A stretch of DNA of 64,000 bases from contig NC_068986.1 of the NCBI RefSeq assembly GCF_001194135.2, forward strand, positions 31,439,187 through 31,503,186, given 5' to 3'. The translations under genes were made by a program, and so were the position numbers. This DNA is from Octopus bimaculoides. Taxonomy: Eukaryota. How positions within the stretch are numbered: the stretch's first letter is position 1; each line of letters begins with the position of its first letter. Shown piece after piece: positions 5,162-58,292 of the stretch. Below the pieces are notes generated by a model that saw only the letters and a program-made list of their open reading frames with translations, was not told where the DNA came from and did no database searches.

Positions 5162-5239
<78 letters not shown>

Positions 5240-5390
5240 GGTTAGTAGAATTGCTTATTATCCAAATCATTACTATAAGATTCATAAAGATGACTTCTGA
5301 AGACATATCATAGTAACATGAATCATTAGCTTCAAACAATAAAATAAAGTAGTAAGCACATTTTTCCTGCTTATGCAATAAAAGTACACA

Positions 5391-5422
<32 letters not shown>

Positions 5423-7398: not shown

Positions 7399-7481
<83 letters not shown>

Positions 7482-10400: not shown

Positions 10401-13140
10401 AGACATAGCATGTGTCTACATATCTCTCTCTCTCTCTCTAGATATATGTGTGTGTGTATGTATGTATGTATGCACATACATATAGATATATATATGTATG
10501 TATGCACATACATATAGATATATATATGTATGTATGCACATACATATAGATATATATATATATGTATGTATGCACATACATATAGATATATATATATGTA
10601 TGTATGCACATACATATAGATATATATATATGTATGTATGCACATACATATAGATATATATATATATGTATGTATGCACATACATATAGATATATATATA
10701 TATATATATGTATGTATGCACATACATATATATATATATATATATGTATGCACATACATATAGATATATATATATATATGTATGTATGCACATACATATA
10801 GATATATATATGTATGTGTGTATGCACATACATATAGATATATATATATATATGTATGCACATAGATATATATATATATGTATGTATGCACATAGATATA
10901 TATATATGTATGTATGCACATAGATATATACATATGTATGTATGCACACATACACACACACACACACACACACTCCTTTCAAAGACAGCATGGTATCATT
11001 TGAGGGAGATTTGGTTACTATTTACAGAAGGTTGCACAACCACATAATCTCCCACACAAGTTTCTCTTTTCCTGTAAAATGTTAAGTGGTGTTAAGCAAA
11101 TTTTGAAACAATTGCAAGGGAATAGACCAAAACAGATCTCAAATAACCATGAAACATAATACTGTACACAACTAGAATTTTTAAATAGTCACCCCTTTTA
11201 GTAGTATTTATTGTATATTGACCATTGTTAGAGTTAAGTTTCTTCTGAAAAGAACCCCTAATAACAACAGAATTATTTTGTGGCTTTTGAATATTTCTTA
11301 TTAACTGTTTTCTGTCTATTTTTATAAACCAAGAGGGATTTTGCAAATTGACTTTTTTTTATAAAGTTAGGAAAATAATAACACACTGGAAGAGTTCTTT
11401 AAGCATTGGATATGATTCCTTACAGCATTTGTTCTGACCTTCTGCTATGGTTAACTTTACCTTACACCCTTTCAGGGTCACTAAAAAGGCATCAATCCAG
11501 TGTGGAGAATTGGTTAAATTGTTAGAGTATAAAACAAGATGCTTTGTTATATCTGTTCCAACCCTGAGTATTTTAATAGCAACACCTGTGATGATACAAG
11601 TGCTAAGTTGTATTGGCACAAAGGCAGTGGCAGTTCCCTTGAATAATATTGGTTGTGTGGACAGAGGCATAGCCAAGTTCTAAAGTTAGGGGGAGCAAGT
11701 ACATAAAAAAAAAGTGCTGAACTCATTTCTCAATAGTTGAAAAGGTGTCAATTTTGAAAAATGAGCTCAGGGGAAGTGGTCGCCTCCCCCCCTGCTCCTC
11801 TATTAGCTATGCCACTGAGTGTGGAGGAGGAGATTTGTAAGCATGAGTTAGTCAGTCTTCCACAAAAAAGCCTTGACCAGGTCTACGCATACAAATACAG
11901 ATAAATGGCCAACCCAGACTAATAGAGGCCCTTATTTAACTTGGTAGTTCTTTTTTTTTTTCTTGCTAACCTAACAACTCAACTATGAGTTAAATTTTTC
12001 AGTTAGCTTGGCAAACTGACTATGGAACAGGTATCTCTGGCTATTTTCTCTTGTCAACCTTTTTAAGTTATGCTACTCTGTAGTTATCAATAGAAATCCT
12101 ATATCAGATCATTTTATGTCCTTTCAGAATATAGTTGAAATATGCTTTGCTGATGAAATCATATAAGACCAAAACATAGCTGGAGTTGTGACTATACTAC
12201 CAAACATTAGACTAATGCCTCACCATAGTCTGTTTCATTAATTTTGATTATTTTAAATTCCAAAGTTATCCCCCTGTCATTCTTAACTAGAATCAGTTTA
12301 AGATGGGGATTATTTTGTCATCATTAGGGCTGTAATTTTAATAAACCAAAATACAGCTATTTTTTAGTATCCACTTTATTCTTAATGTTTCCTGCATCAG
12401 GCATCACAAGTATTTTCTTCCACTCATTTCTCGAGGTAAGCAACGTTGTGTACCTTGCTCAGGGCACAATACTTTGGTAAAGTTTAAATTCTTGGTCAGT
12501 ATTTCAACCATTATATCTCAGATCCTTAAAATATATTGAGGAGTGGATTACAATAGTCAGTTTTAGAAATGGTAAAATTAATCATGAGGAATATTTTTTT
12601 CTTTGTTTCATTAGTTAGTAAACTGATTGATATATTAGGTTGTCTTGGTATGACAGATAGTTTTTGTTAGTTTGGTTACATAATTAGTGCTGAAGATGGT
12701 TGTCATAAAAATATAATAGCTTAAATACAAAAAATAGTTTTGGAAGTAGTTTAAGAAGCTGTTACATCTGTTGGAAACAAAATTTTGTCTTTGTTCATGC
12801 AAAAGACAGACTGTATGAATCATATACAAGAAGTCTGATGATGCATGGTTATAAAATGTAGATATGGTACTGTATGTGTAAGCTCTGTCAAGTATGACTC
12901 ATTTTGTCTTGTATGAAAAATGATAAACAAACAGACTTAAAGACTGGGTGGGCATTAGAGGCTGATGCATTTATTTTATATATTTACTTTATTTACTTTA
13001 TATCACAGTTTATAACCAAGAGCATCATTGGCTTCAGGTTTCCAAAGAGTCAATCTCTGGTTTTGTGTTTCTTTTGGAAAGAGTGACAAGCTAGTGTTTA
13101 CCATGATACAAAGTTTCTTTTTTTTCTCCCCGTTTCTTCA

Positions 13141-13194
<54 letters not shown>

Positions 13195-13195
13195 G

Positions 13196-13279
<84 letters not shown>

Positions 13280-14521
13280 AGGCATGGTGAATAAATTATC
13301 ATCTAAACTATGCAAAAAGGAAAATAATACTGACATCTCATTTTAATGGATATATTTACCAAAATTGTATGAAAATATCTTGAAATACTAAAGAGTAAAT
13401 TTATTCAATAAAATCGCCATTGGCTTCAACCACAGCCTCCAGACAACTTCAGAATCTCCTGCAACTCTTCTGGGTACTTTCCTTGTTTAAGCTGGTGAAT
13501 GCTGCCATAATCCTTGCCTTCAGTTCATCTTTGGTGTTACAAGGAGTTTTGTTGGTTTCTTGCTCAACTGTGCTCCACACATAATAATCAAGGGGGTTGC
13601 AGTCTGGGGAGTTAGGTCGCCAGATGTTAGGTGTGGTGTGGTCGCAGAAATTATCTGATAGCCATGACTGCTTTCTCCTGCTTGTGTGGCACAATGCAGA
13701 GACCTGTTGCCAGACATAATAACTTCCAGCAGCTTCCCCCTTCACCCAGAGCAGCACTACCTCCTTCAGGCACTTGATGTAGGCCTCTATGTTGAGTCTG
13801 TGGACGTGTGGGAAGATGAATGGAAACATAACGTTGCCATCACTAGTTATCACTCTTTGACATTCACTGGATGTTTGATTTTTATCACTCTCAGTACATG
13901 TTTTGGGGACATGGCAAGCCAACGGCTGTTCTGTGTGTTCACCTGTGTGTATATATGTATGTATGCACATGTGCGTTCACCTGGCAGAAATTTTTCTCAT
14001 CTGAGAAAAACCAAATCATTGGTTGGAGGGGATGCTTGAGTTTCTTCAAAAGCTTCATAGCACAGTCTTCTCACTTGTCCTTGATGCCTTGGGATAATAA
14101 TTGGCCCTGTCTCATCTTGTATGAGGAATACCAAATGTCTTCATGCACTACCTGCCTGATGAGAAACTCAGACACTCCCATGTCCCTGGCAATGGACCTG
14201 ATTGACTTGGAGGGATTGTTTTCAATCACGGCCTGGATCTCACCAACAAATTCAAGAGTTCTATTCTTATCGGAATGATCAGAGTGAGTTTTCCAAGCTG
14301 GCGTACTTTCGTAATCCCCTTTAGACTCATCCAACTCTTTCCGAATCCTCTACACTGTCCTCAGATTGACACCCAAACACTTTGAAATGTTTGTATTGGA
14401 GCTTCAAATGCAAATGTCAAACAGCACAGCATATATATATATATATATATGTACATATATATACATACAGATATATATACATATATATATGTATAGATAT
14501 ATATGCATATATACATATATG

Positions 14522-14563
<42 letters not shown>

Positions 14564-14579
14564 TACACACACACAAATA

Positions 14580-14612
<33 letters not shown>

Positions 14613-14622
14613 NNNNNNNNNN

Positions 14623-14708
<86 letters not shown>

Positions 14709-16105
14709 CCTACACTGATATAAATTGGTACACACACATGCATGTATGCAACAGTTTTCCCTATCATTTCTTTCTACCAAAATTTCAAAGGATTAAGTTT
14801 ATACACCCATTATATAGCTTACTTAATGTATGCTAAATAGATGTAAGTGTGGAGACATGTGGTTTAGTGGCTAGGGTATTCATCTCCTGATTGTAAGATC
14901 ATAAGTTCAGATCCTAGTGGCATGTTGTGTCCTTGAGCAAGACACTTTATTTTTCATTGCTCCACTCCACTCAGCTGACAAAAATGAGTTGTACCTATAA
15001 TTCAAAGGGCAAGTCTTAGTGCACTCTGTGTCCTGATGACTTTCCCTGAGAACTATGTTAAAGATATGCATGAATGTGGAGTGCTCAGCTACTTGCATGT
15101 TAATTTCATGAGCAGGCTGTTTGGTTGATTGTATCAACTGGAACGTTTATCATTATAACCAATGGAGAACCAAAGCCATAGATATGTGTTGAAAAGATTG
15201 AAATGCAACTGGTGTACTTGCTGACCTCTGTTGGAACATCTTAATCTCCCTCTCTCTCTCTCTCTCTCTTTCTCTCTCCCTTTCTGATATTTACTGTGAT
15301 TTTAACACAGTTCCATAAGAGATGTTATTGTAGAACAAATACTGTACTAACTGCCTACCCTACCTACAGTGTGTATACATTATGCTACATAGATGGATAT
15401 TTTCATTAAACACAGCCTATACCAGATTTTAAATTCTAATATAAAAATAAAAAGCCGTTTTTTTCTCTGTTTTTCTAAATTGTGTAGTATTTAATTTGAA
15501 ACAGCCTACTTCTGAATAGATTTTATCGACTTTATCCATAAGTTAGAAAATTTGTCCTTATATTTGTCTCAAATAAATCAATAATTTGTAACAAATCAAC
15601 TCTCAAATTTTATATTAAACAGTATGGTATATTTGATTAGTATTGATAAAAATCTCATTAGCAATTTGCAGTACAGAGTTCTTATAGATATAAGAAAGTT
15701 ATTTGTTCATTGATTTTTGCCCTGATCCTATTTTGTATTTCCATACTTTTCAGGGTTCTGGACTAACACTTATCTCTGATATTAACCTGGAAACCCGACC
15801 ATGCACTTGGCTACAAGCCCCAGTTGATCTTCCAAGTGAAGAAGCAACCGATGTGTTGTGTAAGTGATTTGTTTTGTATTTATTTTAGTTTAAGATTCAT
15901 AATGGAAACTTCTCTAAGTAAGAATAACTGTTTCTATTTCATAATCTTTTAGTGTTGTTTTATTTCAGGGGAGCAGTTTTATAATGTTCCTGAAACAACG
16001 ACAGCTGATACAAGTGTTGCAGAAGACGCTTTCATGCCAGAAGAAAGATTTGGAATATTAGATTACTTTTCAGAAACATGGTTATGGAAAGATTTAGAAA
16101 CCAGG

Positions 16106-16140
<35 letters not shown>

Positions 16141-16420
16141 GTTATTATTATTATTATTATTGTTATTGTTATTGTTATTGTTATTGTTGTTGTTATTGTT
16201 GTTATTGTTATTATTGTTATTATTATTATTGTTATTGTTATTGTTGTTGTTATTGTTGTTATTGTTATTATTGTTATTATTATTATTGTTATTATTATTA
16301 TTGTTATTATTATTATTGTTATTATTATTATTGTTATTGTTATTATTGTTATTGTTATTATTGTTATTGTTATTATTGTTATTGTTATTATTGTTATTGT
16401 TATTATTGTTATTGTTATTA

Positions 16421-16451
<31 letters not shown>

Positions 16452-18587
16452 CAAAGCAATGAGCTAGCTGAATGGTTAGCACACCAGACAAAATGCTTAG
16501 TGGCATTTCGTCCATCTTTACATTCTAAGTTCAAATTCTGCCAAGGCTGACTTTGCTTTTCATCCTTTCAGTGTCACTAAAATAATAGATAGGAGCACTC
16601 CGTCGGTTACGACGACGAGGGTCCCAGCTGATACGATCAACGGAACAGCCTGCTCGTGAAATGAACGTGCAAGTGACTGAGCAATCCACAGACACATGTA
16701 CCCTTAACGTAGTTCTCGGGGATATTCAGCGTGACACATAGTGTGACAAGGCTAGCCCTTTGAAATACAGGTACTACTCATTTTTGCCAACTGAGTGAAC
16801 TGGAGCAATGTGAAATAAAGTGTCTTGCTTAAGGACATTACGTGTGTTTGGCATCTGGAATGTTCTGCACACTGTACTCCACCAGCTAGATTACATTTTA
16901 TCAGTGGAAAGTCGGTTCTCAAATTCTGTTGAGGGTCATTGGAGGATATCAGTGATGATGACTGAGAGCAATTTGGGTATCATTGAGGTAGTCTGAGAAA
17001 CATCTTCTGAAGGACTTTCAGGTCAGATACTATATATTCAAATATAGTAGGATCCTACATATATGAAACTCTTTTGCTGAACTGCTGAGTTACATGGATG
17101 TAAACATATCAACATCGGTTGTCAAGCAATCGTGGGGGGACAAACATAGACACAAAGACACACTGATATAAATATACACACACACATATACACATACACA
17201 CATACACATGACAGGCTTCTTTCAGTTTCTGTCTACTCAATCTACAAAATCTACTCACAAGGCTTTGGTTGGCCCAAGGCTATAGTAGAAGACACTTACC
17301 CAAGGTGCTATATACACAGTGGGACTGAACCTGGAACCATTTAGTTGGCAAGCAAGCTTCTTACCGCACACACACACATATATATATTTATTTATATAAA
17401 GGCATTACTATACATAAATGCCTCATGCTAAGAGGGGCTCTAAAGTCAAACTACCATAATAAACACATGCTAACTACTTGATGAATTCTTATAAAGATTT
17501 TATCCTATTCTTGAATTATATATGTATATTGGCAATCAAGTTTTGGTACTTTTCAACATAACACTGCCAATAAAGGACACTTTGCAATGCTATTCTTAGA
17601 AATACATTTATAAAAACGTGTGTATGTGTGTGTGTTTGCTATATTATTTCAGTATGGTTATGCTCCGTGTTCCTGTTTTGTAATATCAACAACAAAATAT
17701 AACCTAAGCTATAAAACATGCTTCAGGTTTGGTCAGCATTATGCAAATCCCATAGAAACTACAAGCAGACTTGCATGTGTCACGAAATGCTGCAACTCCT
17801 TCTCTCCCTCCTTTTCTCCCCCCCTCTCTCTCTCTGTTTCTTTTCTCTTTCTTGTTTTAGTATAAAGAACTTTAGCATAATAACAGTCTGTATTTCTTTT
17901 GCTAGCTTTCAAGAAAAGAAAAATAAAAGTCTAAAAGAGATGCTGGTGACACTGTTATGAAACAATGCATTACATACTTTTCAAATCATATAAGTTTTGT
18001 TTAAGAAGTTTAAATTCCTCTGTGATTTGTAATTGAAATTACATAAAAATGAATGGTAAAGAATTCTTTGCAAGCAAAATATAATCAGTGTTAAGGTTAT
18101 CAAAATATATATTAAACTATCTTTATATGTCAATAAATACATACATAAAAATATAAAATGAGTTATTTTTGAATAAAATGAATTTATAGAAATACTCAAG
18201 GCTGTGCGGGTAAGAAGCTTCCTTTTCAACCATGTGGTTTTGGGTTCAGTCCCACCGTATGGCACCCTGGGCAAAAATTTTCTATTATAGCCCCCTGATC
18301 AACCATTGTCTAATAAATAAATTTGGTAGATGGATGCTGTACGTGTGTATATATGTGTATATATATACATATACCCTTTACTCTCTTTTACTCTTTTACT
18401 TGTTTCAGTCATTTGACTGCAGCCATGCTGGAGCACCGCCTTTAGTTGAGCAAATCGACCCCAGGACTTATTCTTTGTAAGCCTAGTACTTATTCTATCG
18501 GTCTCTTTTGCCAAACCAGTAAGTTACGGGGACGTAAACACACCACCAACGGTTGTCAAGCGATGTTGGGGGACAAAGACAGACACA

Positions 18588-18682
<95 letters not shown>

Positions 18683-20053
18683 GCATATATACGACGGGCT
18701 TCATTCAGTTTCCGTCTACCAAATCCACTCACAAGGCTTTGGTCGGCCCAAGGCTATAGTAGAAGACACTTGCCCAAGGTGCCGCGCAGTGGGAATGACC
18801 CTGCAACCATGTGGTTGGTAAGCAAGCTACTTACCACACAGCCACATACACATAATTTATAAAAAGTAAAAGGAGGTAGTCAAAATTTTGAATAATTAGT
18901 TATTCAGCGCTTTCATCTCGTTTCAGAGATTCATAAGCTGAATCACTGAAATGTGATGAAAGCAGTAAATAAATAATTATGTAAAATTCTGACTACCTCC
19001 TTTTTCTTAATATATAAAATCTGCACACTACTTCAAACAATCTACCCACACACACACACACACACCACTTGACAGCCAGTTCGACAAAAAGTAAATACTG
19101 GGTTTGGTTCGTTCAACCAAACCCTTCAAGATTGTGCCCCAGCATGGCTGCAGTCTTATGACTGAAACCAATAAAAAGTAAAGGACAGTGAGTGTTGTAA
19201 GTATGTCAAATTGTTTTTAACTGTTCTTTAGAATTTTCTTTACATTATTCTAGAAAACATGAAAAATTACTGCTGAAAACCAAAGTACCAAGTCCAGCAA
19301 CAGAATGGATTGGGAATGTGTTCTGTTCCAGTGAAACTGATGGCCTTGGCTTGTTAGCTTTGCCTACCATTTCCGTCTTTCAACCATTTTCCATTTCTTA
19401 TATAATGCCATACACTGGTATTGTTGGGGAAAGGATTCCTATAAGCATAACTATACAATCGAATATCAAGAAATGCCTTACTGTAAGTATCCTTTTTGTT
19501 ATATTTTCTTTCTTTTTATTTTTTTTTTTCTTCTGAAAAATACATTTTGTAGATTTGAAACATTTTTCCTACATTGTCAAGGTTTTGTTATTTCATTTAT
19601 TTTATTTATTTTTAGACTGTTAAGGATTTTGTCATCCCTCTTAAACATCTTAGCATTCATCTTTTTATTAGATATTCAACAAATTCCAGCTCTCCTTGAA
19701 GAGACAATAAAAATAGTTTTTCTTTGTTTTTTTTTTTCTCTTTTACTTTATTGACTAAATAATCCTATCATTGTTCTACTTCATATTCTTTACTCGATAA
19801 GCTGAACAATCTCAGCCCCATGGTTTGCAGTTGTCATTGTTATGGATTTTAGATACTCTTTTACTTGTTTCAGTCATTTGACTGTGGCCATGCTGGAGCA
19901 CTGCCTTTAGTCGAGCAAATCAACCCCAGGACTTGTTCTTTGTAAGCCTAGTACTTATTCTATCGGTCTCTTTTGCCGAACCGCTAAGTTACAGGGGCGC
20001 AAAAAACACCACCATCGGCTGTTAAGCGATGTTAGGGGGGGGGGACAAACACA

Positions 20054-20092
<39 letters not shown>

Positions 20093-23000
20093 CACTAAAT
20101 GAGAATGAAGACCAATGAATTACTCCAAACATTTGGTCAGTTCAGCTACAATTATCTTATAAGTCTGCTCAAGTAGTGTTAATTAGAAATACTCAAAAAT
20201 AATAACCAGCAAACTAAATTTAATTTAAATTTTGTGCTGTAGTTGTATTCTACAGCAAAGCAAAGTCATCCAGGGGCCTTGGTTACTCACTCCAAAATGA
20301 AAATGATCAACCCCAGAATGAAAGGGGATCTGACCTCACAGCAGAACAAAAGGGGATCTGACCTCACAGCAGAACAAAAGGGGATCTGACCTCACAGCAG
20401 AACAAATTCTCATGTGCTTGCATCATGATAAAACACCATGAGCTGTTTAAAATTCTCTTTGGCTTAGGGGTAAAGGTTATGACAGGCATGACACATCACC
20501 TGGTTTATCAAGACCCTCTTGGTCCCTTGCTTTCATTTAGCACCAAAGGATCAAGAGCATCTTGATAAACTGGATCTTTGAGTATTTGCTTGGCTACATT
20601 TTCTTTCAGACATTGACAATTTAAATGTTTAGATTGGACATCAGCCTCATCGATCTCACTCGTCTGGAAAAACCTGCAAAGGCCATGAACACTGCTTTAT
20701 GCACAAACTAAACAAGAAAAAAATTAAGATTGATGACAGCAATACTTCAGACCTGTCCTAAACTTGAATTACTTATGTTTCTCACTTTAGCTATCCATAA
20801 AAAAAACTTTCTCAAAGATCAACAATGTTCCTTTGCTAAATGTTTATGTTCCATTCTGTTTATTCCTTTGATAGATAGGGTTACAAGTGAAGGTGTCAAG
20901 TAACTCGGAAAAGACACCAAAAGAAATCAAAGGGCCGGTGTCTTGTCTCTGTAAAGAAGAATATATTACGACCAACATTTACTTAAATGACCTCCCCATT
21001 GGTGTAATTAATGTTACAGTACAGGTAAGCTTGAGTTTTAATTAATTTTTTAGCGGTGGAGAGGTTTGGTAGATAATTAAAAAAAAATTGGGGTTTTTGC
21101 TTTTTGGAGACTTTTCCAATAGATACAAATGATTGTATGGTATGCATACGAGGAGGTGCAGAAAAGTTCCTAACTTTAAGTGTATTGTGAAAGGCCTGGT
21201 TGAAGGCCAAACCTTCCAAAGTTCTTTTACAGGGCTTAGAAAAACTGAAGGACTACTGCAATAAATGTGTGAATCTGAGAGGGGAATATGTTGAATAAAA
21301 TCTTCCTATATTTTCTGTTACCCAAAGCAAGGAACTTAAAGATTTAATTTGTAATCATATCCTAGCCCACAACTTAGATTAACTCCATTACCTGATCCTT
21401 TGGTGTCTTTAGCAGAATGCACTTTACTGTGAACATTCAAACTTGATCCACAGTTGTTTCTCCATGTCCATGTTTTCCTGCAGGTAATCAGACTAGGAAT
21501 TAGCTGTGTCAAATTCACTACTCTGGGAGGATCTACAAAAGATAATAGGCATTGCCCCTACCTGCTGACTAACTTAGGAAACATTGTTTTTATCTGAGGT
21601 TCCTTATTCAAAAGATATGAATAATGTGATATATTTTTGTCTAAACACTTTGTTTACAGGGTAAATCTATTTTGCCTAATAATAGAAGATGTAGTAAAAA
21701 GACTGTTGATTCTCGTTATATTGGAATGATTGATTCCAGCTCTGCTTTCATCAATATGAGGGTAAGTAGTATCAATTTCTTATAATTTGTTGATTTTTTT
21801 TTTTTTCACCACTCACTTCAAAACCAAAAATCAATTTTTTTTTTTCTATTTTTGTAATTTAAATAGAGGATTACTTACTTATTTTTACTATATATCTGGT
21901 AGCAATTTTGATTGAAGAGAGATTTAAAAAAATTCACCTGAGACAAATGAGATTTATGTACAAAATTGATACATTAAAATTATTTAATATACTTTAATGC
22001 GATTAAAATTAAAGAAAAAAAGGAGAAAAAATGCATTCAGATTTCTTGTTTTCCATAAATTTACATGAAATTTTTTAATCTTATTTTATTTTTCATTTCT
22101 TCAGCCAAAAGGTTTCGTACAAGAAATTACTCACTCCGAATACGTCTGCCCTTCAGGTATGCTTATTCATATAACTCATAAAATATCTACTCTTGGTGGA
22201 GTAACTGATAAATTTGATCCCCAATACTTGACTGGACCTTATTTGATTCTGTAATTCCCAAAAGAATTGGAGAATCAAATAAGGTCTAGACAGGTAATCA
22301 TGGGGGCCTATCTTGGCTCTCTGTGGTCTAGATTCAGTGCTGGATTAACCATTAAACAAAATAAGCATTTGCTTAGAGCATCAAAGAAAAGGGGGCACCC
22401 CAGAAATAGTAAATGGTTTATGGCACAAAGGAAATCACTTCAAACTTGTTAAAATAATATTCAAAGTGGTTTATATGATCAGAAATATAATTTCAAAGTG
22501 TTTATGGTGTCATAGTGAGGATCTAATCCAAGACATTGCATTTAAAAAAGTAGAAAATTTTTCAAATATAAATGAAGTGGAAGTAGGCAAAAAAAAAATA
22601 TTATTTTCCCTCTTACTGTTAGTTTTATTTCATTTTGAAAAATGAAAATTTATTTTATGGTTTATTATTGTTTATATTTTCAATTACATATATACGCGAG
22701 CACCAACATCTTTTAAGTGATTAAAGCCTCAATGGGTCTTAATCCAGCCCAGTTTAGACCAACAAGCTGAACCTACTTCTTATAGACCCTGGCTAGAAGG
22801 ATAAAGAGAGGGTATCAAAAATTAGGCCAAAGAGTGAATTATATTCAGCTAACACACATGCTGTATTTCATTAAGTTGTATGTATTAATTCATTGAAAAA
22901 TCATTAACTGAAACAGATTTTTTGTTTGTTTGAATGTTTGTTCATTTAGCATTCATTGTTCTATGCTAGAATGAATTGGACAGGGATGCATTTGTGGCCA

Positions 23001-23162
23001 GATGCTCTTCCTGTTGCCAACATTACTTGTTTTTCAAGCAAAGGATTTATTTATCCCACAGCTCTTTGAAAGTTCAAAGTAACTAGTTGTAATCATCAAT
23101 GAGGAATGTAAACACCATTCACTGTTTTATTGAAGCAAAACCTCGGGATGTTAACTTTCATT

Positions 23163-23248
<86 letters not shown>

Positions 23249-24386
23249 AGTAGGTTTCAGTAGTCATCAGGATAGAATGCTACTGTTTCGGGACCCTCTT
23301 GATAATTCTACAGTTCACTAGCTCCCTTCACTGGTGTGAGACCCCTACCTACTGGATCGACTGACTAGTATTCAATCTTAATTCCTTCAACCCAGGATCA
23401 TCAACACCATTCCAAATGATCCATCCAACAGTTATGCTTGTTCTAGATATATGTATCATCATCATCATCATCAACATCATCGTCTTTTAACGTCCGCTTT
23501 CCATGCTAGCATGGGTTGGACGATTTGATGTATAAATCTGTAATCTGAACAAGGAGCACATATTTTTCTAAGCATATTTATATTTTTTTTAAAAAAAAAG
23601 GTTGTAAAAGATTTATTTTAATTTGTTAAATTAAAATTTTTTTTATTCTTTTTCCCCCCAATTTCAGAGGATCATGGTGGAAATTATGTTAATGTCCTTT
23701 CAACTGAACTACCAAAAGATACAGTCCCTGGAAGTGTGAAAGCAGAAATCAACATGTTTGGTAATAAATTTGGGTATCTTTATACTTTTTTTTCCTTTTT
23801 CAGTTTGTAATTTTCAGAAATGCTATCCAAATATTAATTTGTTTCAACTACACTTATTTAAAATATTGGTAATTATTAACACTTCACTTTCAGCATTAAA
23901 TTATCTTATTGCCATTCTTTGTTTAAAACTTCACAAATTATTTGGTTCAAACTTCACAAAATTAAACAACTTAACCAACAACTTTAACGACATTTTGACG
24001 TGATTTTGTTATATGATTTAATGGCACCTCATATTTTCTGTGCAATTCTAGGTAATATGTTATGGCCTGGGTTATCATCTCTAGAAAATATAGTGAATGA
24101 TCCTATCACAAATGGAGAGGGAAACATCCTGAGCTTGGCTGCTACCATTTACGTCATGGATTTCTTGAATGCTGTTGGAAAAGTTTCTTATGAAATTGAA
24201 ATGAAAGCAATTGAAATAATGGAAAAATGTATGACCATAATTTAATTTCATTCTTTACATTGTAGTTATGATGACAGTTTGATTGTGTTGATGTTTTAAA
24301 TACACATTTTTAAGCTTTAAAAAATGCCTTAGACAACTGGTAGGAGTCTGATAGGGTAAAACATTCGAACACAAGATTCCCATCTG

Positions 24387-24419
<33 letters not shown>

Positions 24420-27400
24420 NNNNNNNNNNNNNNNNNNNNNNNNNNNNNNNNNNNNNNNNNNNNNNNNNNNNNNNNNNNNNNNNNNNNNNNNNNNNNNNNN
24501 NNNNNNNNNNNNNNNNNNNNNNNNNNNNNNNNNNNNNNNNNNNNNNNNNNNNNNNNNNNNNNNNNNNNNNNNNNNNNNNNNNNNNNNNNNNNNNNNNNNN
24601 NNNNNNNNNNNNNNNNNNNNNNNNNNNNNNNNNNNNNNNNNNNNNNNNNNNNNNNNNNNNNNNNNNNNNNNNNNNNNNNNNNNNNNNNNNNNNNNNNNNN
24701 NNNNNNNNNNNNNNNNNNNGTTATGGGACAAACTAAGAAATAGCATATTTGTTATTGTGACCATTCAAGATCTAAATTGTAAGTTTAAGCAATAATCATT
24801 ACAGGTGTTTGAAAAATAACTTAAGCTTGGTATTTCGCTGATTTTCTTTTGAGAACTATTAGGTCTTAGGAGACACATGACATGTGATCTTCTTCTAGCA
24901 CATTAACAGTCCACCTAGTGGTTGTCGTTATATATAAATATACATTAATCCCTTGAGATCTCAGATATCTTTTCTGAATCTCTCTGATTCTTTCAATGTG
25001 CTGGCTTCCTGGTAATAAATCGATATTAATTAATATCTGATTTTTTACCCTTTGTTTTAATTTAATAAAATTGTAAGCTTCAATAGAATATTTTTTCTAT
25101 ATTTGTTGATAATGATTATTATCTATTCCTAAAGTTTTAAACTAATTATTGAATCATTCATTTATTTATACATTTATTTTCTTCAACAGGTTATCAACAA
25201 CAAATGAATTACATTCATAAAAACGGTTCTTTTAGTATATTTGGTTCACAAGACAAGGAAGGTAGTGAACTATTAACTGCATTTGTCCTCAGAATTCTAG
25301 TGAAAGCTCGTTCATACATTTATATCGATGAGGTGCAACTTCAGAAATCCATATCCTGGCTGAGAGATCAACAGCTCGAAAATGGTTGCTTTTATGATAA
25401 ACTGAATTATTCGTTGACATTTGGACTTTATGAAGATAGGAAGAATATGGAAAGAATTAGTACTGCATTTGTGATTATGGCATTGCTAGAATTTGGCACA
25501 CCACAGCATGTATGTTTTATTTATTTCTCTCCTCATTAATTTATACACAAGATTTCACTCTGTATTTCTTTTATGAAGATCATGTAATCATTTATTTATC
25601 TATTTTTTATATTGGCATTGCTGGTATTGCTTAGCCCAGGGATAGTTTTCATTGAATAGATCTATGTTCGGATACAGAGTGTACTGGGTGTTTGTTTTTT
25701 TTTTTTATATAATGTGACCCCATCATCAGTGCATTTTTACATGGCATCAACACCATGGACACCTTATCTTGTAAAACTCCAGAATTTTTTTTGATGGAAC
25801 CCAATTTGAGAAACATTGTACTTGACCGTTAAACTTGAGTATTTCTTCCATTCACAATTATCCATAATTAGAGCTTTCTAGTGGGCAATACAGTTTCAGA
25901 GACCAGTGGTGATGACTGACTGCAAAAGCATCTAGAATGGCGCCCCAATGACTTGCTGCATTAGTTAAGGAATCTAGATAATGATGAAACTTGTTTAGCA
26001 CCATGATGAAGAAAGACGAATTATATGGATCCAAATGCTCGTCTGTCTTATTAATGAAGTGAGGAGTGAGGACAAATATGTCATATTTTTTATAAGATCT
26101 ACCTAGTGTTTCTGTTTGAGAAGCACTATCCTGGGGGGGTAGATATGGAAATATTTATGGAAAATTCAGTAGTAATATTTAACTCTTTATTAAATTTTAG
26201 GACCTGATCATTGATAAAGGGCTTAACTGTCTCCGATCCCATGATTATGAAGACATATACATGTTATCACTCTATGCCTATGTCTTTACTCTGTATGGCC
26301 ATGCTGAAAGTGATAAGGAGAAATATCAGAATGTCCTGGAGAGGAGATCAAAGGTTTTAGGTAATATTTCCTTTTTTAAAATATTCATTTTATTTATTCA
26401 TGTATTTATTAATATTTCCAAAGATTTTTATCAGCATCATATGAAATGAACTTAGTTACTGTTCAGGTCATTTTCCTGAGTCACCATCTCATCCTTATAT
26501 GCCAGTCCATTGCAAGGTAACCTATTCACGGCTAAGTGAACTGGAGCAACATGAAATCCAGTGTTTTCCTCAAGAACACAATGCACAGCCAGTTTCAGAA
26601 ACCATAATCTCATGATTGTGAGTGCAACACTCTAACCACCAGGCCCACATTTTCTTATGCATATGCACATGTTCTTTATGAATTCTGTTCTCATTCTCTT
26701 ATTAATAAAATGAAACTGATGTCTAATAAACTATTCAATATTCATAATAGTTATTCTGCTGGGATCGAGTTTGCCTTTCATCCTTTCAGGGGTTGATAAA
26801 ATAAGCACCAGTTGCATATTGGGGTTCATGTAATTGATTTACCCCTTCCCCCAAATTTCTGGTCTTGTGCCAAAATTTGAAACCAATATTTATAAAAGCT
26901 CATTTATTTAAAACATTTCCCCAAACAATTTCATTTGCATCATGACATCTAAGTTATTAAACAAAGACTTCATATTTATTTAATCTGATGCAGGTATTAT
27001 TTACACAAATATGACACATCTATTATTACCTCAGCAGAAAACTTGGTTACAAGTCCTATTTACAAAAGTTATTTTGCATTAGACATAGGAATGTGATAAA
27101 GCAGTTTGCTTTGCCACTACATATGGATCCAGATTTGATCTCACTGTGTACCTTTGGAAAATGTCTTCTATCATAGCTTTATCATGTAGAATTCATCCCA
27201 TGAAAGCTGTTTATGCAAAATCCCATCATATATGTAGTTTCATCATTGGTTTTATATCTACTTTTCCATGCTGGCATAGGTTGGATGGATATTTTCGAGG
27301 TAGTTTTTTTTATAACTGGATACTCTCTTTGACACCTATAATTTTAGTTATCTTTGACCCTTTAGCATTTAAACCTGTCATATATAGTCCAAATATTTTA

Positions 27401-27794
27401 CCTGTTTCATGTTCATGCTGGCCAGATCTGGCTTCTTGTACCAACCCTACAGTGTCATTTTAAAAATAAACTATCACATCATTGAAATCTCAAAGCGACA
27501 AAATATTACATGATTAATTCAAAACAATGTGAATAAATAAGCGTTAAATTTGATAGAGTAATCTGAATGCTAAAAGGTTAATGACATGCTGAGATATCAT
27601 CCTCATCCTCATCATCATTTAACGTCCGCTTTCCATGCTAGCATGGGTTGGACAATTTGACTGGGGACTGTTGAAGCGGATGGCAGAGTTTCTACAGCTG
27701 GATGCCCTTCCTAACGCCAACCACCCCGAGAGTGTAGTGGGTGCTTTTTACGTGCCACCAGCATGAGGGCTGTATTCTAAAACTCAGGATACAC

Positions 27795-27885
<91 letters not shown>

Positions 27886-30198
27886 CAGCCAAGGATATAC
27901 ACATTGCAAAGCAAAAACAAAAACCTGGTGCTTTACAAATGAAGTCCCTTGAGTTATTTCTTCTGCATCTAGTTAACCCTCTTGATACCAACCCTGCTGA
28001 CACCACCTCTGGCTCTGAGTACAAATGTCTTGTTTTCATTAAGTTTTGAATTAAAATCTTCCACCAAACGTTTAGTCACAATTTATGTTCCTAACACTAG
28101 CCTAATTATAACTAAATTACTTTACTAAATTCTTTGTTATATTTAAAATTAACCAAAAGAAACACAGAGCATCTCAACCGAAATATGGTAACAAAAGAGT
28201 TAATTACTCTCTTGTCGTTCTTAGCATCAATTATGCAATGAACCAGTAATTGGCCCATTGGAAACTATAATCAATGAAGCTACTGATCACAATAAAATTA
28301 ATTAATCCATCATATTATTCACAGTAAAATATGTTACTGATCTAAAATCAATAGAACGAAATTGAATATCAAATACTGTAATCCATATAAGGGACTCTAA
28401 TACCCTTACAAATTGTTTAACCTGTTCAATAATTTACTGGCAATTAATAAAATTGCATATCCTAAAGCAATCATTCTTCATTCATTATCTTTTACTTGTT
28501 TCAGTCATTGAACTGTGACCTTGCTGGGGTACTGCCTTAAACGGTTTAGTCAGAAAAGTCAACACTCAGTACTTATTTTTATGTTTGGTGCTTAAACTAT
28601 TGGTGTCTGTTTGCCAAACCACTATGTTATGGAGGCGTCAACAAACCAACACCAGTTGTTGAGAAGTGGGATGGAGGGCAAGCATAAACATAAAGATACA
28701 CGCATATATCTACATATATATATATACATATATATATATATGAAAGTGAGAGAGACACATACAACAGGCTTCTACACAGATTTCATCTATCAAAATCACT
28801 CACAAGGCATTAGTCAGAGCAGGACTCTAGTTGAAGTCATTGGCCCAAGGAGCTGTGCAGTAGGACTGAACTCAAAACCACAAAGTTGCAAAACAAGCTT
28901 CTTAACCACACAATTATGCCTGTGCCTATTATTTATTTATTTTATTTATTTTACAGGGGAAGAAACATTTTGGTTGAATTCAGAAGATTCCAATTCTATA
29001 ACCTCAATGGACATTGAAGCAACATCTTATGCTTTGCTCTCTCTTTTGGGAACGGAAGCTACCAGCAAATGGCAAGATTTGAGACCAGTTATCAGGTGGC
29101 TTACCAAACAACGGAAACCCATGGGAGGATTTATGGCTGCAAAGGTTTTTATCATTTTTTTAAACTCCTCAGTTTCTTTTAAGTAATATATATATAAGTT
29201 ATATATATATGTGTGTGTGTGTGTACGTGTGTACATGTGTGTGTTGGACGGTTTGACCAGGGCTGGTAAACTTTCCCTTTTTAACACCAACCACTCTGAG
29301 AGTGTAATGGGTGCTTTTACGTGCCACTGACACATGTGCCATTTGCATGACACCAGTATCTGCCATGACTGCAATTTTGCTCTGATGGGTCTTCTTCTCA
29401 AGCACAACATAATGCCAAAGTTCTCAGCCATTGCCTCCATGTGGCCCAATGCTTGAAAGGAACTAGACCACTTTGCCTCCATATATATATATATATATAT
29501 ANNNNNNNNNNNNNNNNNNNNNNNNNNNNNNNNNNNNNNNNNNNNNNNNNNNNNNNNNNNNNNNNNNNNNNNNNNNNNNNNNNNNNNNNNNNNNNNNNNN
29601 NNNNNNNNNNNNNNNNNNNNNNNNNNNNNNNNNNNNNNNNNNNNNNNNNNNNNNNNNNNNNNNNNNNNNNNNNNNNNNNNNNNNNNNNNNNNNNNNNNNN
29701 NNNNNNNNNNNNNNNNNNNNNNNNNNNNNNNNNNNNNNNNNNNNNNNNNNNNNNNNNNNNNNNNNNNNNNNNNNNNNNNNNNNNNNNNNNNNNNNNNNNN
29801 NNNNNNNNNNNNNNNNNNNNNNNNNNNNNNNNNNNNNNNNNNNNNNNNNNNNNNNNNNNNNNNNNNNNNNNNNNNNNNNNNNNNNNNNNNNNNNNNNNNN
29901 NNNNNNNNNNNNNNNNNNNNNNNNNNNNNNNNNNNNNNNNNNNNNNNNNNNNNNNNNNNNNNNNNNNNNNNNNNNNNNNNNNNNNNNNNNNNNNNNNNNN
30001 NNNNNNNNNNNNNNNNNNNNNNNNNNNNNNNNNNNNNNNNNNNNNNNNNNNNNNNNNNNNNNNNNNNNNNNNNNNNNNNNNNNNNNNNNNNNNNNNNNNN
30101 NNNNNNNNNNNNNNNNNNNNNNNNNNNNNNNNNNNNNNNNNNNNNNNNNNNNNNNNNNNNNNNNNNNNNNNNNNNNNNNNNNNNNNNNNNNNNNNNNN

Positions 30199-30244
<46 letters not shown>

Positions 30245-33200
30245 AATGGTGGTGCCTCAGCATGGCCACAGCTTGTGAAATGAAACTGATTCAATTCATA
30301 TAAATGAATCATCATCATGGCTATTCCAATCTCTGCTGATTTCCCTGACAATGTAATATAGCCTCCACTTGATGTACTGAGTACTGTACTTTAATTGATA
30401 ATCCTTCTGTTTCTAATGGAATTGCCTTCAATCTAAAATCTTTTAATGTTTCAGGATTCAGTTATAGCATTTCAAGCCATTTCCCAGTATGCACTGATGT
30501 GGTCAGAGCGACAGGACCCTGCAGATATAACCATTTATATTGACAATGAATACGACCCAACAGAGACTTTTCAACTCACAAACCAAAACCAGTTTGAATT
30601 GTTCACTTATGCAAAACCACTTAAGAACAAGATTCGGATTGATGCTGAAGGCAGAGGTTGTGGTATCGTTCAGGTAAACCTTTCTTTATTCGTATCCAAA
30701 CAATGAATGTAAATATATAAGCATTTGAAGTATCAATATTTTATACACTATATACATACTTGCATATATAGACACACACACACACACACATACATACGTA
30801 GGTACATAACACTTGCTTACATACATGCTTACATACATTGCTTGCATATATAAACATTTGAAGTATCAATATTTTATGCACTATATACATGCTTGCATAT
30901 ATACACACATACATACATACTTGCATATATACACACATACATACATACTTGCATGCATACATACATACATAATATTGGGTTGTCTGGAAAGTTCGTGCCT
31001 ATTTTTCAAAGAAAGAAAAAGGTCAATAAATACTTGCCATTACATTTTTAATCAACCAAATATGAACCATTTTGTTGCACAATGCGTCTCCATCTTTCCT
31101 TTAACTTGAAAATACCCTCTTCCCAGAACTAAGGTGCTTTCAAGGCAAATAAGTTGAAAGGTAAGCTACTATAAATCGGCACGAACTTTCCGGACAACCC
31201 AATACATGCATGCATACACACAAGATAGATAGCATTTGGGAATAATCACTGTTAATGCTTGTTGAAATTTTACATAATGACCAGTACTAAATTGTACAAT
31301 AAAAAATGTTTAAAAATTTGAAAAATAAAAATCCTCACCAAAATCAAGTTGGTTTAATCATATTAATATTCTCTGTATCTTTTTTTTTTTTTTCTTATAC
31401 ATTTTAAGACTTCCTTGAAATACAATGTTCTTAATCTAAAACAAGAACAGAGCTTCCATTTGCGTGTAGGAGTGGAAAATTCTTACAAAAACTGTGCTGA
31501 AAGGAAGCTGAAAATCTGCAGTCGGTTAGTGTTGGTTTACTAATTTCTTATTTTGTTGATTTTTTTTGTTTTTTTTTGTTTTTTTTTAATATCAGTTTAA
31601 GATTAGTTATATCGTTAGGGTGTTGGAGAAACTGTCTTGCAGTACTTATCATGGCNNNNNNNNNNNNNNNNNNNNNNNNNNNNNNNNNNNNNNNNNNNNN
31701 NNNNNNNNNNNNNNNNNNNNNNNNNNNNNNNNNNNNNNNNNNNNNNNNNCCCCCAAAAGGATGAAAGGCAAAATCGACCTTGGAGGAATTTGAACTCAGA
31801 ATATAATGATGAACAAAATGCTTAGCAGCATTTCACCCAGCATGCTAACGTTTCTGCCAGTTCACCGCCTTTTAGAAAATTCGTTTCTACTCTAAGCACA
31901 AGGCCTGAAATTATGCAACTGGTATTTAATTTATCGACCCCGAAAGGATGAAAGGCAAATCCGACCTTGGGAGAATTTGAACTCAGAACGTAAATACAAG
32001 CATGCTAACATTTCTGCCAGCTCACCACCTTATTAGAAATCCTTATTATAGATTTCCTATATATACTGCTCTCAACTAAATCATCATCATCATCGTTTAA
32101 CGTCCGCTTTCCATGCTAGCATGGGTTGGACGATTTGACTGAGGACTGGTGAACCAGATGGCTACACCAGGCACCAATCTGATTTGGCAGAGTTTCTACA
32201 GCTGGATGCCCTTCCTAATGTCAACCATGGGTGCTTTTACATGCCACCGGCACAAAGGCCAGTCAGGCGGTACTGGCAACGGCCACGCTCAAAATGGTGT
32301 TTTTATGTGCCACCTGCACAGGAGCCAGTCGAGCGGCACTGGCAATGATCTCGCTTGAATGTCTTTTAACTTCACCCACCCCTGCTCGGAAATTGCTGAC
32401 TTTGTATAAAACATTTGAAATCATTATTACCTCTGCCTTAGCAAAGGCGGAGGTATTATATAGTCATGTTTGTTTGTTTGTTTGTCCATGGACAAGATAT
32501 CTCAAGAACCACTGGGTGAATTCGGATGAAACTTTCAGGGATGTTTGGCCTTGTGACTGGCACAAACTGATTAGATTTTCAGATCAATCTGGTACCAGAC
32601 AAGAATTCTGGATTATTTTTCTGGTTTTTTTACTTAATTTTTGAGAGCAGTCAGGTTCATTTTTAGTATTCTTGTTTGTGAGAGCAGTCGAGTTTATTTC
32701 AGATATTCTCATTCTAAAAATCATCTCCAGCTAATCGTTGAGAGGACGTTGGTGTTGCTTTGGCGGAGGTTTGCGCTCTCTGAGTGCTCTTGTTATTATT
32801 GTCTTTACTGCTACTACTATTTTATTAGCCATCAAAAAGCATCAACTACAATAGAATGTTCTGCTTGAAAAGCTAAACTTTTTATCTTCCTCCCAACAAA
32901 CCTATTTATTCCACTTTCGGAATTGTTTATACTCTCTTATTCCTGACACATATTACAAGTTTCCTCATTTGAAGGACTTAATATTTTTGGAAGCAGAATG
33001 AATGCCACACCATTACATTTCCCCCATTATCTGTAATCTTTAATTTTTTAATGCTTAATTATCAAATTGTTGTTTATTTCCAATAGTTACACAGGGAGAA
33101 GTGAAAAGACGAACATTGTTATAATGGAAGTGAAAATGCTAACAGGATGGATCCCACAGCAAATTGTTGATGTGAGTCGCTTTATTATATTTTTGCTTGT

Positions 33201-36200
33201 TTACTGTTTCACTGACTTCAGGTGCTAGACTGTGGCTATGCTGGAGCACCACAAAGTTTTACTTGACCATGTGGTAAGAAGTTTGCTTCCCAACCACATG
33301 GTTCTAGGTTCAGTTCCACTGCATGGCACTTTCGGTGAGTTTCTTAGCCCCAGGCTAACCAAATCCTTGAAAGAAGCCTGTCATATGTATTGGGTCATCC
33401 CATAAATAATGCAGTTTTTTTTAATACTTCTTTTATTTTTCAAAATTAAGATAAACAAAGTTCTTTTTTAATCTAAAATATACTCTCCTTCATTTTCTAC
33501 AATGCTCTTCCATCTTTCTGGTAGACTTGTAAGGCCCTTCTTCCAAAATTCACTTGTCTGTAATGAAAAATACTCCTCCAGTACTGTTCTGACCTCGTCT
33601 ACAGAATTCATGTTTTCTCTGTCCAAACAATTTTGAAGACTGCAGAATAAATGATAATCAGATGAGGCAACGTCCATCTGCATTTTTCTGCTTTTAAAAA
33701 GAAAAAAGGATTTTATCCTTTATATCTATACTGTTCAGTATCTATGCGTTGAATAAAATTTATCTTTCTACTTGTTCTACCATACATTTCAGCGCTTCGA
33801 AAACAAACTTGTTTGTTTACATACGGTGTAAAACAAAATAAATTAATATTTACTGCTTATCTAGTTTTGTGTCTGCTTTAATATTTGTGTTGTTTTAATG
33901 ATCTTTCAGCCAAAACATGCAGAAAGAGTCGGTGTTAAAAAGTATGAAATGACAGAAGACTATGTATATTTATATTTTGATGAGGTAAGTGTAAAACTAC
34001 ACATAGAATTTCTATAATACACATATGTGCTCCACATTATACATAGATTCATTCAACTATATATAGATTTATTCTGCTGCACGTAGTTTTACTACAGTAC
34101 CCATAGATTGACTCTACTTCACATAACCTTAATTGCTCTATCTACCATACTGCAGTCAATTTGAATAGCTGGGCCCTCTTTCTCCCATCCATTCTCCTCA
34201 TCCAGCAACCACTCATAGTAGCACTTCTGTGCCTCTTTCATTCCATAACACACTTCTCTCCACACAGTATCTCAATTCTCTCCAGTACACTGCTTTGCAA
34301 TCCCAGAATGCATCATGCTGTACTCTTTCACCACAACTTTCTCTCACCCTTTCTCCCTGTTTCTGTTGTACCTGTATTTCAAAAGGACCAGCCTTGTCAC
34401 ACTCTGTGTCACGCTGAATCTCCCCGAGAACTACATTAAGGGTACACGTGTCTGTGGAGTGCTCAGCCACTTGCATGTTAATTTCACGAGCAGGCTGTTC
34501 CATTGATCGGATCAACTGGAACCCTCAATGTTGTAACCGACGGAGTGCCAACAATTCACATCCACTTGCCTCCATTCTAGCATCTTCAATATCTTGTTGA
34601 TAGCAGCAGCTCTAAAGTTTTTCTCCAGACAAGAAAAATGAGGATTTTCAGAGATGATGCATTTGATTCTTATTTAACTTCTACATCTGAGAAAAGAAAA
34701 TTTAAAAATTAGAAAGATTGGACAATTGCTTGTTAGCGGTCAGAATGATTTCACACATGATTACACGTTTTCACCAATGGTTGGTATGCTGTTATTTGTC
34801 CACTCACCATGATTCACTACATGCAATTATCATTATTGTTATTACTGCTATCAATAACTTTGAGATGTTTTAGTCTTTGTCACTTAGCATGATAGGTGTT
34901 AGGATTACAAAAAAGAAAAACACACCAGTTACCAAAGGGAAGACTTCATGGTAGTCTTTCTGGAATTGGTGTTGGCTGTGTGCATTAGGAGATAAGCAAC
35001 ACATGCTTTTGGTTTTAGTTTATCATTATAAAAACTGCATGAGAAGTGAATACGTCATAGATATTAATAATATCAATAACAGATAACATATATAATGATT
35101 AATTAAAGCAAACAATATGGTTTCCTTAGCTTGTTTACAGGAAACAAAAAGTATTGAAATGAACAGTGTCTTGGAAAGTCAAGTATATAAAAAGAGGCTG
35201 AATGTAAGGTGGGAACAGAGAGACAGACAAACAGACAACTGGATAGCGAGGCAGGAAGGGAGAGAGATTTACAGCAGTACTGATGTTCTATTTATGCGAT
35301 TGTTACTAATTATTTTGTTTCTTTATTTGTAAAGATGAATAAAACTGCAAAATGTATTGAAATCGAGATTGAACAAGTGTTGGCATTGAGCAGTCTTCCA
35401 GCAGGAGTGGTCGTCTATGATTATTATGATAGAGGTCAGTATCTTTCAGTACGTACATACATACATACATACATATATATATACAATCATAGTGGAGGTG
35501 CAATGGCCCAGTGGTTAGGGCAGCAGACTCACTGCACTTTTGATTATGTACTTGTCTATATGTTTTTTAATCATACCTAATGCGCCTATTATTATAGGGT
35601 TTTATTATTATTATAGGATTGTTTTTTTTTTGTTTTTTGGGGGGATTTTTAAGCCCTAAATCTACTGTTATTTCTTTTATGAAAATCCATTGATTATGTC
35701 CAATAGTCTAAAACAAGAAAAGACACTAATATAACCCATAATTTCTTGTGTACCTGTCATGTGATTCATTTAATTGTCATTTTCCTTTTTCTTTTATCTT
35801 CTAGATGTGATTGGTCATACCTTGTATGGACTGAAAACAACATGTGGAACCAAAGAAGAACTACCAGTAGTTTCTCAAGAGACATATGAAAATTCTATGA
35901 CACAACAAAGACAGCCTATTGGACTACCCCCTGCACTACAAAAGTTGTTAAAGCTAAAATCTAAAAACGTAAACCATATGAATGCTGCAGCAGGTATGTT
36001 CCTAAACTGGAAACCTAACAATTGTAGATCATTTATTGTCACTTAATAGTGGTGTCTTGGAGTAAAGGAAAAGTTTCAAATGAACAGAGTCAGCAATCTG
36101 GTTTTTATTGTCACTTCACTTATTTTTCTATAATCATAAGGGGGGGTGGTATGAATATTACAACTTCTCTTGTCCCCTTCCTTAAAATCTCATATTCCAT

Positions 36201-58244: not shown

Positions 58245-58292
<48 letters not shown>

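Follow-up and report, generated by a model that had tools for sequence, protein, structure and literature searches.

An alpha-2-macroglobulin-type gene of Octopus bimaculoides with a replaced thioester motif shared by octopods and cuttlefish

Invertebrate innate immunity relies heavily on thioester-containing proteins (TEPs), whose defining chemistry is usually taken to be the thioester. Superfamily members without it are already known, namely complement C5, MCR, the ovostatin-type alpha-2-macroglobulin (A2M) proteins and five of the 11 TEPs of Biomphalaria, whose mutated motifs indicate that the loss is frequent in molluscs (PMC7016707). Monomeric inhibitors (rat alpha-1-inhibitor-3, A2ML1) need thioester conjugation to inhibit, whereas tetramers cage the protease without it (PMC9156758). 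Here we analyze a macroglobulin gene in a 64,000-nucleotide stretch of the Octopus bimaculoides genome (assembly GCF_001194135.2, contig NC_068986.1, positions 31,439,187 to 31,503,186 of the forward strand; below, this whole stretch is called the window, and positions are counted from its first letter). The thioester motif of this gene is replaced, and the same replacement is found in a second octopod genus and in a cuttlefish.

A preliminary description of the window had claimed that one exon corresponds to the thioester exon of the family and that both reactive residues are lost from it, Cys to Asn and Gln to Gly, with GE.N kept. Both claims hold. The exon, the 16th of 29 in the window, has exact borders (AG at 24050-24051, GT at 24229-24230) between two phase 1 introns. 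Its first two bases finish a split Gly codon, after which 58 full codons' worth of residues are read, and its last base gives a Cys together with the GT that opens the next exon at 25190; the protein of the octopod Argonauta hians reads MEKCYQQQ at this junction. The homology cannot be due to chance, because the exon is one of 29 that match, in order and in register, a macroglobulin of 1757 amino acids, and because the Pfam TED_complement match that spans it has an E-value of 4.8e-60.

In pairwise alignments to every retrieved relative of at least 150 residues, about 100 relatives that cover the site read [P]xGCGEQN[M] in the columns where the octopus protein reads PITNGEGNI. Overall, GCGEQNM has become TNGEGNI: the Cys position is Asn (AAT, 24111-24113, plus strand) and the Gln position is Gly (GGA, 24120-24122, plus strand), while G, E and N of G-E-x-N are retained. 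Only five aligned relatives are exceptions to the canonical motif, with GGGEPN, GSGEQN, QGGELN, ETGEEN (a CD109-like protein of Saccostrea echinata) and GNGEHN ('ovostatin-like' XP_076066360.1 of Oratosquilla oratoria). Since the Cys and the Gln of the beta-cysteinyl-gamma-glutamyl thioester are both replaced, a classical thioester cannot form. With no Cys-Gln thioester possible, classical covalent tagging of targets is excluded for the predicted protein.

The replaced motif is not confined to the window. An exhaustive profile search with the adjacent 106-residue exon (25192-25509) found one close relative, the orthologue GAB1607259.1 of A. hians (1757 amino acids, deposited as 'murinoglobulin-1-like isoform X1'), which is 92% identical over the query and carries the identical replaced motif. 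Three more copies were found by a search with the open reading frame (ORF) of the thioester exon and by contig look-ups. One (Logan SRR11869385) has 91% nucleotide identity to 24000-24339, including intron, and comes from a closely related species. Another (Logan ERR12945500) belongs to a short-read set of the cuttlefish Acanthosepion esculentum, a member of the Decapodiformes (bioRxiv 10.1101/2025.04.22.649952), and the last lies on a 250-kb contig (ENA ERZ21867824) with 83% nucleotide identity to the cuttlefish copy. All five independent datasets encode the same 11-residue stretch around the motif; 8 of its 11 codons vary synonymously among the five sequences, without a single amino acid difference. 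Conservation extends to the splice sites of the exon. Between the window and the ERZ21867824 contig, synonymous sites are saturated (pS 0.74) and pN is 0.285. An identical motif in octopods and cuttlefish means that the replacement was present in their common ancestor, and the sequences thus indicate that it predates the octopus/cuttlefish split and has been strictly constrained since.

Comparison with A. hians supports purifying selection and speaks against decay, in keeping with the preliminary description. The in-window protein is 81.5% identical between the two species, and the Nei-Gojobori method (NG86) gives a dN/dS ratio of 0.085 (dN 0.108, dS 1.27), a synonymous divergence that places them in different genera at least. 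For the thioester exon the ratio is 0.014, the lowest among exons with a computable ratio, with 56 of 58 residues identical in spite of 25 synonymous differences. The fastest-evolving exon codes for a linker near the C-terminus (53% identity, dN/dS 0.31, a length difference of eight codons). As dS is high against A. hians and saturated against the decapod lineage, the ratios are approximate, although their direction is unambiguous. The A. hians copy is deposited under a generic name, and a motif-based survey of TEPs that looks for GCGEQ would overlook the gene or put it in the wrong class.

As a separate observation on the A. hians locus, a 68-bp unit is tandemly triplicated at positions 69016-69217 (3.0 copies, 97% matches). 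The unit contains the acceptor site together with about 55 bases from the start of the thioester exon; the annotated exon takes the last copy. Splicing to an earlier acceptor would put the exon out of frame, as 68 cannot be divided by 3. The window has no such repeat.

The surrounding thioester domain (TED) is altered as well. In 16 relatives with GCGEQ, 69 TED columns are near-invariant (conservation of at least 90%), and the cephalopod protein departs from 25 of them. Up to and including the motif, GD reads GN, a G reads W, and G-C-G-E-Q-N-M reads T-N-G-E-G-N-I; the P-N after it has become A-T, the W of WLTAF is L, and STQDT is AAKDS. The G...GG loop, which contains the reactivity-defining residue in thioester proteins, is shortened, in a part of the structural model that has low confidence. 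The Pfam TED score is 204 bits, versus about 305 in relatives. Most of the changes are common to the octopod and decapod lineages, and the alignments indicate that the thioester apparatus was remodelled once, early, and then frozen. The overall TED model (pLDDT 81, pTM 0.84) keeps the alpha/alpha-toroid fold; its TM-score against the TEDs of A2ML1, A2M and CD109 is about 0.8 (Foldseek, A2ML1 and A2M first).

Domain content and sequence similarity both assign the gene to the A2M branch. Pfam detects MG4, A2M_BRD, A2M, TED_complement and A2M_recep in canonical order in the window protein, and MG2 and MG3 in addition at the N-terminus of the A. hians orthologue. The domain order of the superfamily is thus present though CGEQ is absent, as it is from the accepted members C5 and MCR. 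A phmmer search of PDB sequences scored human A2M highest (477 bits, 7e-142), followed by A2ML1 (473), CD109 (341), mosquito TEP1 (236), C3 (177) and C5 (138). The named relatives are all of A2M type except the CD109-like protein of S. echinata mentioned above. The best full-length relatives (25-30% identity) are 'A2M-like' proteins of 1685-2020 residues from Haliotis, Argopecten, Bulinus, Tachypleus, Ischnura and Bacillus, and these nearest relatives all retain GCGEQ. The predicted protein places the gene with the long protostome macroglobulins of A2M type, which have an extra Cys-containing domain at the C-terminus. Membership in CD109 or the iTEP group was considered and rejected (no hydrophobic C-terminus, a 270-residue extension after MG8, and a weaker match to CD109 than to A2M). 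LDLa, ANATO, NTR and Kazal domains had no Pfam match in the window protein or in the full-length orthologue (including PF00057 and PF01821), and a regular expression for the LDLa-like Cys pattern had no hit in the six frames of the window.

A bait-type region of 48 residues lies between ETRPC and FSETWLW (15802-16054), with no Cys-rich ANATO domain in it. It is 84-86% identical to that of A. hians, so its rate of change does not exceed that of the remainder of the gene. Just 5' of it is a furin-like RKKR (RRKR in A. hians), at the position where C3, C4 and C5 are cleaved into beta and alpha chains, and no six-Cys module follows. Among relatives, Ischnura, Bacillus rossius and Solemya have RxxR at the same place, whereas Haliotis, Argopecten and Bulinus lack it.

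Beyond MG8, the cephalopod protein continues for 270 residues. The linker exon in this extension contains several N-x-S/T sequons (NGT, NST, NAT, NVS, NLS), as would suit a glycosylated stalk that carries the C-terminal domain. The last approximately 120 residues (42253-45435, plus strand, three exons; residues 1626-1757 of the A. hians protein) form a Cys-containing domain that matches no Pfam family. Its CPxC...C...CxC pattern is invariant and its last Cys near-invariant, and the domain recurs in long A2M-like proteins that have the thioester motif, from gastropods, bivalves, horseshoe crab and insects. When the final 132 residues are modelled with AF2 (pLDDT 81.8), the best PDB matches are the C345C domains of C4, C3b and C5, the NTR domain of PCOLCE, TIMP-1 and agrin NtA. 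These matches are homogeneous but weak (E-values of at least 2.6e-3, TM-scores of about 0.5), and we tentatively call the modelled domain NTR-like. An NTR-like module on A2M-type proteins, if true, would bear on how C3, C4 and C5 acquired C345C. The tail ends in ...RRLAKSCKR and contains no hydrophobic C-terminal segment (maximal 19-residue Kyte-Doolittle mean 0.67), hence neither a transmembrane helix nor a GPI signal.

To set the exon borders, the A. hians protein was mapped exactly on its own locus (GCA_054771915.1), where it occupies 38 coding exons with unique GT-AG junctions, and exons 10-38 were transferred to the window. All 29 found AG/GT at homologous positions with the same phases, and their lengths match those of A. 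hians except in three exons (one codon, four codons and eight codons). The result is a single open frame of 1453 codons plus TGA on the plus strand, with all 56 splice signals canonical and no stop or frameshift. A self-search of the window for duplicate or alternative exons or a second copy yielded none (29 HSPs for 29 exons). The 300-N gap at 24420-24719 lies in the intron 3' of the thioester exon, 190 bases after it. Since the protein runs on without a break there, no exon can be hidden in the gap; N runs at 29502-30198 and 31656-31749 are also intronic, with continuous protein across both. The in-window exons correspond to residues 316-1757 of the A. hians orthologue, or the 3' four-fifths of the gene. 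For these, the preliminary description's statement that the rest of the gene is intact is correct; exons 1-9, which code for the approximately 315 N-terminal residues, lie upstream of window position 1, outside its reach.

Based on the above, we consider it very probable that this is a functional coleoid gene of the A2M branch that lost its thioester early and acts on targets without covalent tagging. The protein would be secreted and cut at RKKR into two chains. By analogy with other family members, proteolysis of the bait-type region may still trigger a conformational change, and the target would then be handled without covalent tagging. The likeliest mode would be non-covalent steric trapping, only if the protein is oligomeric; if it is not a trap, it may be a non-inhibitory binding or carrier protein. 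For an oligomer a trap is the natural reading, because tetrameric A2M inhibitors do not need the thioester, and we put the chances of a non-covalent trap, within the functional hypothesis, at about even. For a monomer, a binding or regulatory function without inhibition would be more likely. The preliminary description had likewise proposed function without covalent binding, as in C5 and MCR. Its core stands, as the gene is thioester-less and under selection. The comparison has to be amended, since C5 and MCR are analogies and not relatives, and the ovostatin-type thioester-less A2M proteins are the closer analogy.

Several observations weigh against this interpretation or narrow it. The bait-type region, at 84-86% identity, is unlike a bait in a protease arms race, and its conservation leans slightly towards a fixed endogenous partner instead. 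A thioester-less monomer would be a poor protease inhibitor (PMC9156758). No spliced transcript across the 24228/25190 junction was found, only genomic ORFs, in a word-index protein search that was incomplete and gives weak negatives (it missed the A. hians orthologue despite long exact shared stretches). Intactness covers the 3' four-fifths of the gene, and furin cleavage and secretion are predictions from the amino acid sequence.

Among other explanations, the one that survives best differs from the preferred one only in the inferred mode of action. The gene may code for a functional thioester-less macroglobulin that is no longer a protease inhibitor, but a non-covalent binding, carrier, opsonin-like or signalling component, which we regard as a real, if tentative, possibility. 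The bait-type region is conserved like the rest of the gene, 25 otherwise near-invariant TED positions are changed, and monomeric family members depend on the thioester to inhibit (PMC9156758); thioester-less C5 and MCR are not protease inhibitors (PMC7016707 and established knowledge). Conversely, purifying selection has retained every domain that a trap requires (MG ring, bait-region domain, CUB/TED/MG8), and the thioester is dispensable for tetrameric A2M-type inhibitors.

A bolder version of neofunctionalization appears improbable. An ancient macroglobulin could have given its invariant ex-thioester loop a new, sequence-specific role, as a binding site or an Asn-Gly reactive centre. The protein would then be a non-covalent effector like C5, but of separate origin within the A2M branch, and would serve a complement-like cascade of cephalopods. 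This idea combines the two-chain precursor, the missing thioester and the NTR/C345C-like C-terminal module.

The gene could also be read as an orthologue of a known thioester-less class, MCR/TEP6 or complement C5, given the mutated motif, the furin-like RKKR where C3, C4 and C5 are split into beta and alpha chains, and a C-terminal model nearest to C345C/NTR modules. We consider this very unlikely. MCR was rejected for want of LDLa (regular expression in six frames, and Pfam) and of a transmembrane helix (the tail has no hydrophobic C-terminal segment, its highest Kyte-Doolittle score being 0.67). C5 and C3 were rejected because ANATO is absent and Pfam (no ANATO or NTR match) and sequence distance (477 bits for A2M and similarly for A2ML1, versus 177 for C3 and 138 for C5) are against them. 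Moreover, neither the RxKR site nor the C-terminal domain is peculiar to thioester-less proteins, as A2M relatives that keep the thioester have them too.

New chemistry is highly improbable too. No dipeptide forms succinimides as readily as Asn-Gly, and its invariance across the two sampled superorders, Octopodiformes and Decapodiformes, is circumstantial evidence that it might form a succinimide or isopeptide-type reactive centre in place of the thioester. The Gly, however, is the one kept from CGEQ, the ovostatin-like relative of the mantis shrimp reads GNGEHN, and structural constraint at the TED/MG8 interface suffices to explain the conservation.

Decay into a pseudogene after loss of the active site is extremely unlikely, even though the catalytic hallmark of the family is gone and the Pfam TED score is reduced (204 versus about 305 bits): the view that this is not pseudogenization agrees with 1453 codons without stop or frameshift, 56 of 56 canonical splice signals, dN/dS of 0.085 overall and 0.014 in the thioester exon, and a motif that is invariant across lineages with saturated synonymous sites. 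An assembly or sequencing error, suggested at most by the nearby N run at 24420-24719, is hardly conceivable, because the identical motif recurs in four other independent assemblies or read sets (the A. hians genome, SRR11869385 with its 91% nucleotide identity including intron, ERR12945500 and ERZ21867824).

The positions of the exons and motifs are collected in Table 1.

Table 1. Exons and motifs of the macroglobulin gene in the window (AG/GT, flanking splice signals; mapping, transfer from the A. hians orthologue).
Feature	Position	Strand	Basis
Macroglobulin gene, in-window part	1452..45438	+	mapping, splicing
Exon, MG4 start	1452..1564	+	AG/GT, Pfam
Exon, MG4	3206..3379	+	AG/GT, Pfam
Exon	4886..5098	+	AG/GT
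Exon	5712..5943	+	AG/GT
Exon, A2M_BRD; one codon shorter than in A. hians	6048..6220	+	AG/GT, Pfam
Exon, A2M_BRD	6825..6971	+	AG/GT, Pfam
Exon	8323..8434	+	AG/GT
Exon with furin-like RKKR (9027-9038; A. hians RRKR)	9022..9089	+	mapping
Exon, start of bait-type region	15754..15859	+	mapping
Exon, remaining bait-type region and FSETWLW	15969..16104	+	mapping
Exon, Pfam A2M domain	19254..19482	+	Pfam
Exon	20875..21024	+	AG/GT
Exon	21660..21761	+	AG/GT
Exon	22105..22156	+	AG/GT
Exon preceding the thioester exon, end ...AEINMF + G	23668..23760	+	AG/GT
Thioester exon (TED start), thioester motif absent	24052..24228	+	AG/GT, alignment
PITNGEGNI codons	24102..24128	+	alignment to P-x-G-C-G-E-Q-N-M
Exon, TED; 92% identity to A. 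hians	25190..25509	+	profile search
Exon, TED	26201..26360	+	AG/GT
Exon, TED	28957..29144	+	AG/GT
Exon, TED end	30455..30673	+	AG/GT, Pfam
Exon	31409..31524	+	AG/GT
Exon, A2M_recep / MG8	33087..33171	+	Pfam
Exon, A2M_recep / MG8	33910..33984	+	Pfam
Exon, A2M_recep / MG8, end ...VYDYYDR	35335..35434	+	Pfam
Exon, start of C-terminal extension; four codons longer than in A. hians	35805..35993	+	AG/GT
Exon, Ser/Thr/Asn-rich linker	40348..40625	+	AG/GT; fastest-evolving
Exon, start of Cys-containing C-terminal domain (NCPVCWDN...)	42253..42319	+	AG/GT
Exon, C-terminal domain	43716..43859	+	AG/GT
Last exon, C-terminal domain, ...AKSCKR + TGA (45436-45438)	45293..45438	+	AG/GT

The intron between the first two exons of the C-terminal domain contains a decayed Mos1/mariner-type transposase (42550-43258, plus strand; HTH_48 domain, E-value 3.8e-20), whose coding sequence is now scattered over three frames. 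Several minus-strand exons at approximately 56467-62026, downstream of the macroglobulin gene, belong to a neighbouring gene for inorganic pyrophosphatase (Pfam PF00719, E-value 6.7e-15), with exon fragments that read ...FHDIPL... and ...TWEDP...DPIDVCEIG... The window has 34% G+C and is rich in (CA)n and (TA)n microsatellites. Further N runs are found at 14613-14622, 37451-37460 and 58293-58471; none of the gaps of the window interrupts coding sequence.

What is new here is the age of the loss, which is common to both coleoid superorders, the invariance of the motif that took the place of GCGEQ, and the concerted change of the TED around it. Nothing is overturned, because thioester loss is a known and recurrent event in the family. 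The gene does offer a clean natural experiment, in which the thioester was lost before the octopod/decapod divergence and the tightest constraint has rested on that very exon since. It is a candidate for asking what the A2M scaffold does without covalent capture, and the 25 changed positions are candidates for TED residues that serve only the thioester.

The Octopus vulgaris alpha-macroglobulin proteinase inhibitor is, like the product of the window gene, a cephalopod protein of the A2M family. It was reportedly a thiol-ester protein in the hands of Thogersen et al. in 1992 (Biochem J 285:521, a reference given in PMC9839350 and PMC9156758), and if so, it would be a paralogue of the window gene. 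Among 20 relatives looked up by name, there was no thioester-bearing cephalopod paralogue. The alpha-macroglobulin of Octopus has been described as a dimer (PMC9156758), and cephalopods have been reported to possess C3, TEPs, an A2M and CD109 (PMC4361686); a literature search found no description of a thioester-less A2M-type gene in this group.

C5 resembles the cephalopod protein in the lack of a thioester and in a two-chain precursor site, and its C-terminal NTR/C345C module has a weak fold match there, but it differs by its anaphylatoxin domain and its place in the C3/C4/C5 branch (138 bits for C5 against 477 for A2M). MCR/TEP6, including BgMCR1 and BgMCR2 of Biomphalaria, similarly has a mutated thioester in a conserved functional TEP. 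However, the two defining features of MCR, LDLa and a transmembrane helix at the C-terminus, are absent from the cephalopod protein, and BgC3-1, BgC3-3 and BgTEP3, which also have a mutated CGEQ, belong to other subfamilies (C3-like and iTEP) (PMC7016707).

The ovostatin-type A2M proteins share with the cephalopod protein both the bait-region architecture and the replaced thioester, and the 'ovostatin-like' protein of O. oratoria (XP_076066360.1, GNGEHN) even has the same Cys to Asn change. Chicken ovostatin is a thioester-less tetramer with inhibitory activity. The ovostatin-type and cephalopod losses are independent, in distant lineages.

The closest match in overall build is to the long A2Ms of protostomes. 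Those of Haliotis asinina (XP_067665112.1), Argopecten irradians (XP_069137675.1), Bulinus truncatus (KAH9505790.1), Tachypleus tridentatus (XP_076347932.1) and Ischnura elegans (XP_046398811.1) have the domain order of the cephalopod protein and are among its best full-length matches, at 25-30% identity. They share with it the CPxC...C...CxC...C domain that follows MG8, but they keep GCGEQ, whereas the cephalopod TED is changed at 25 of 69 near-invariant positions.

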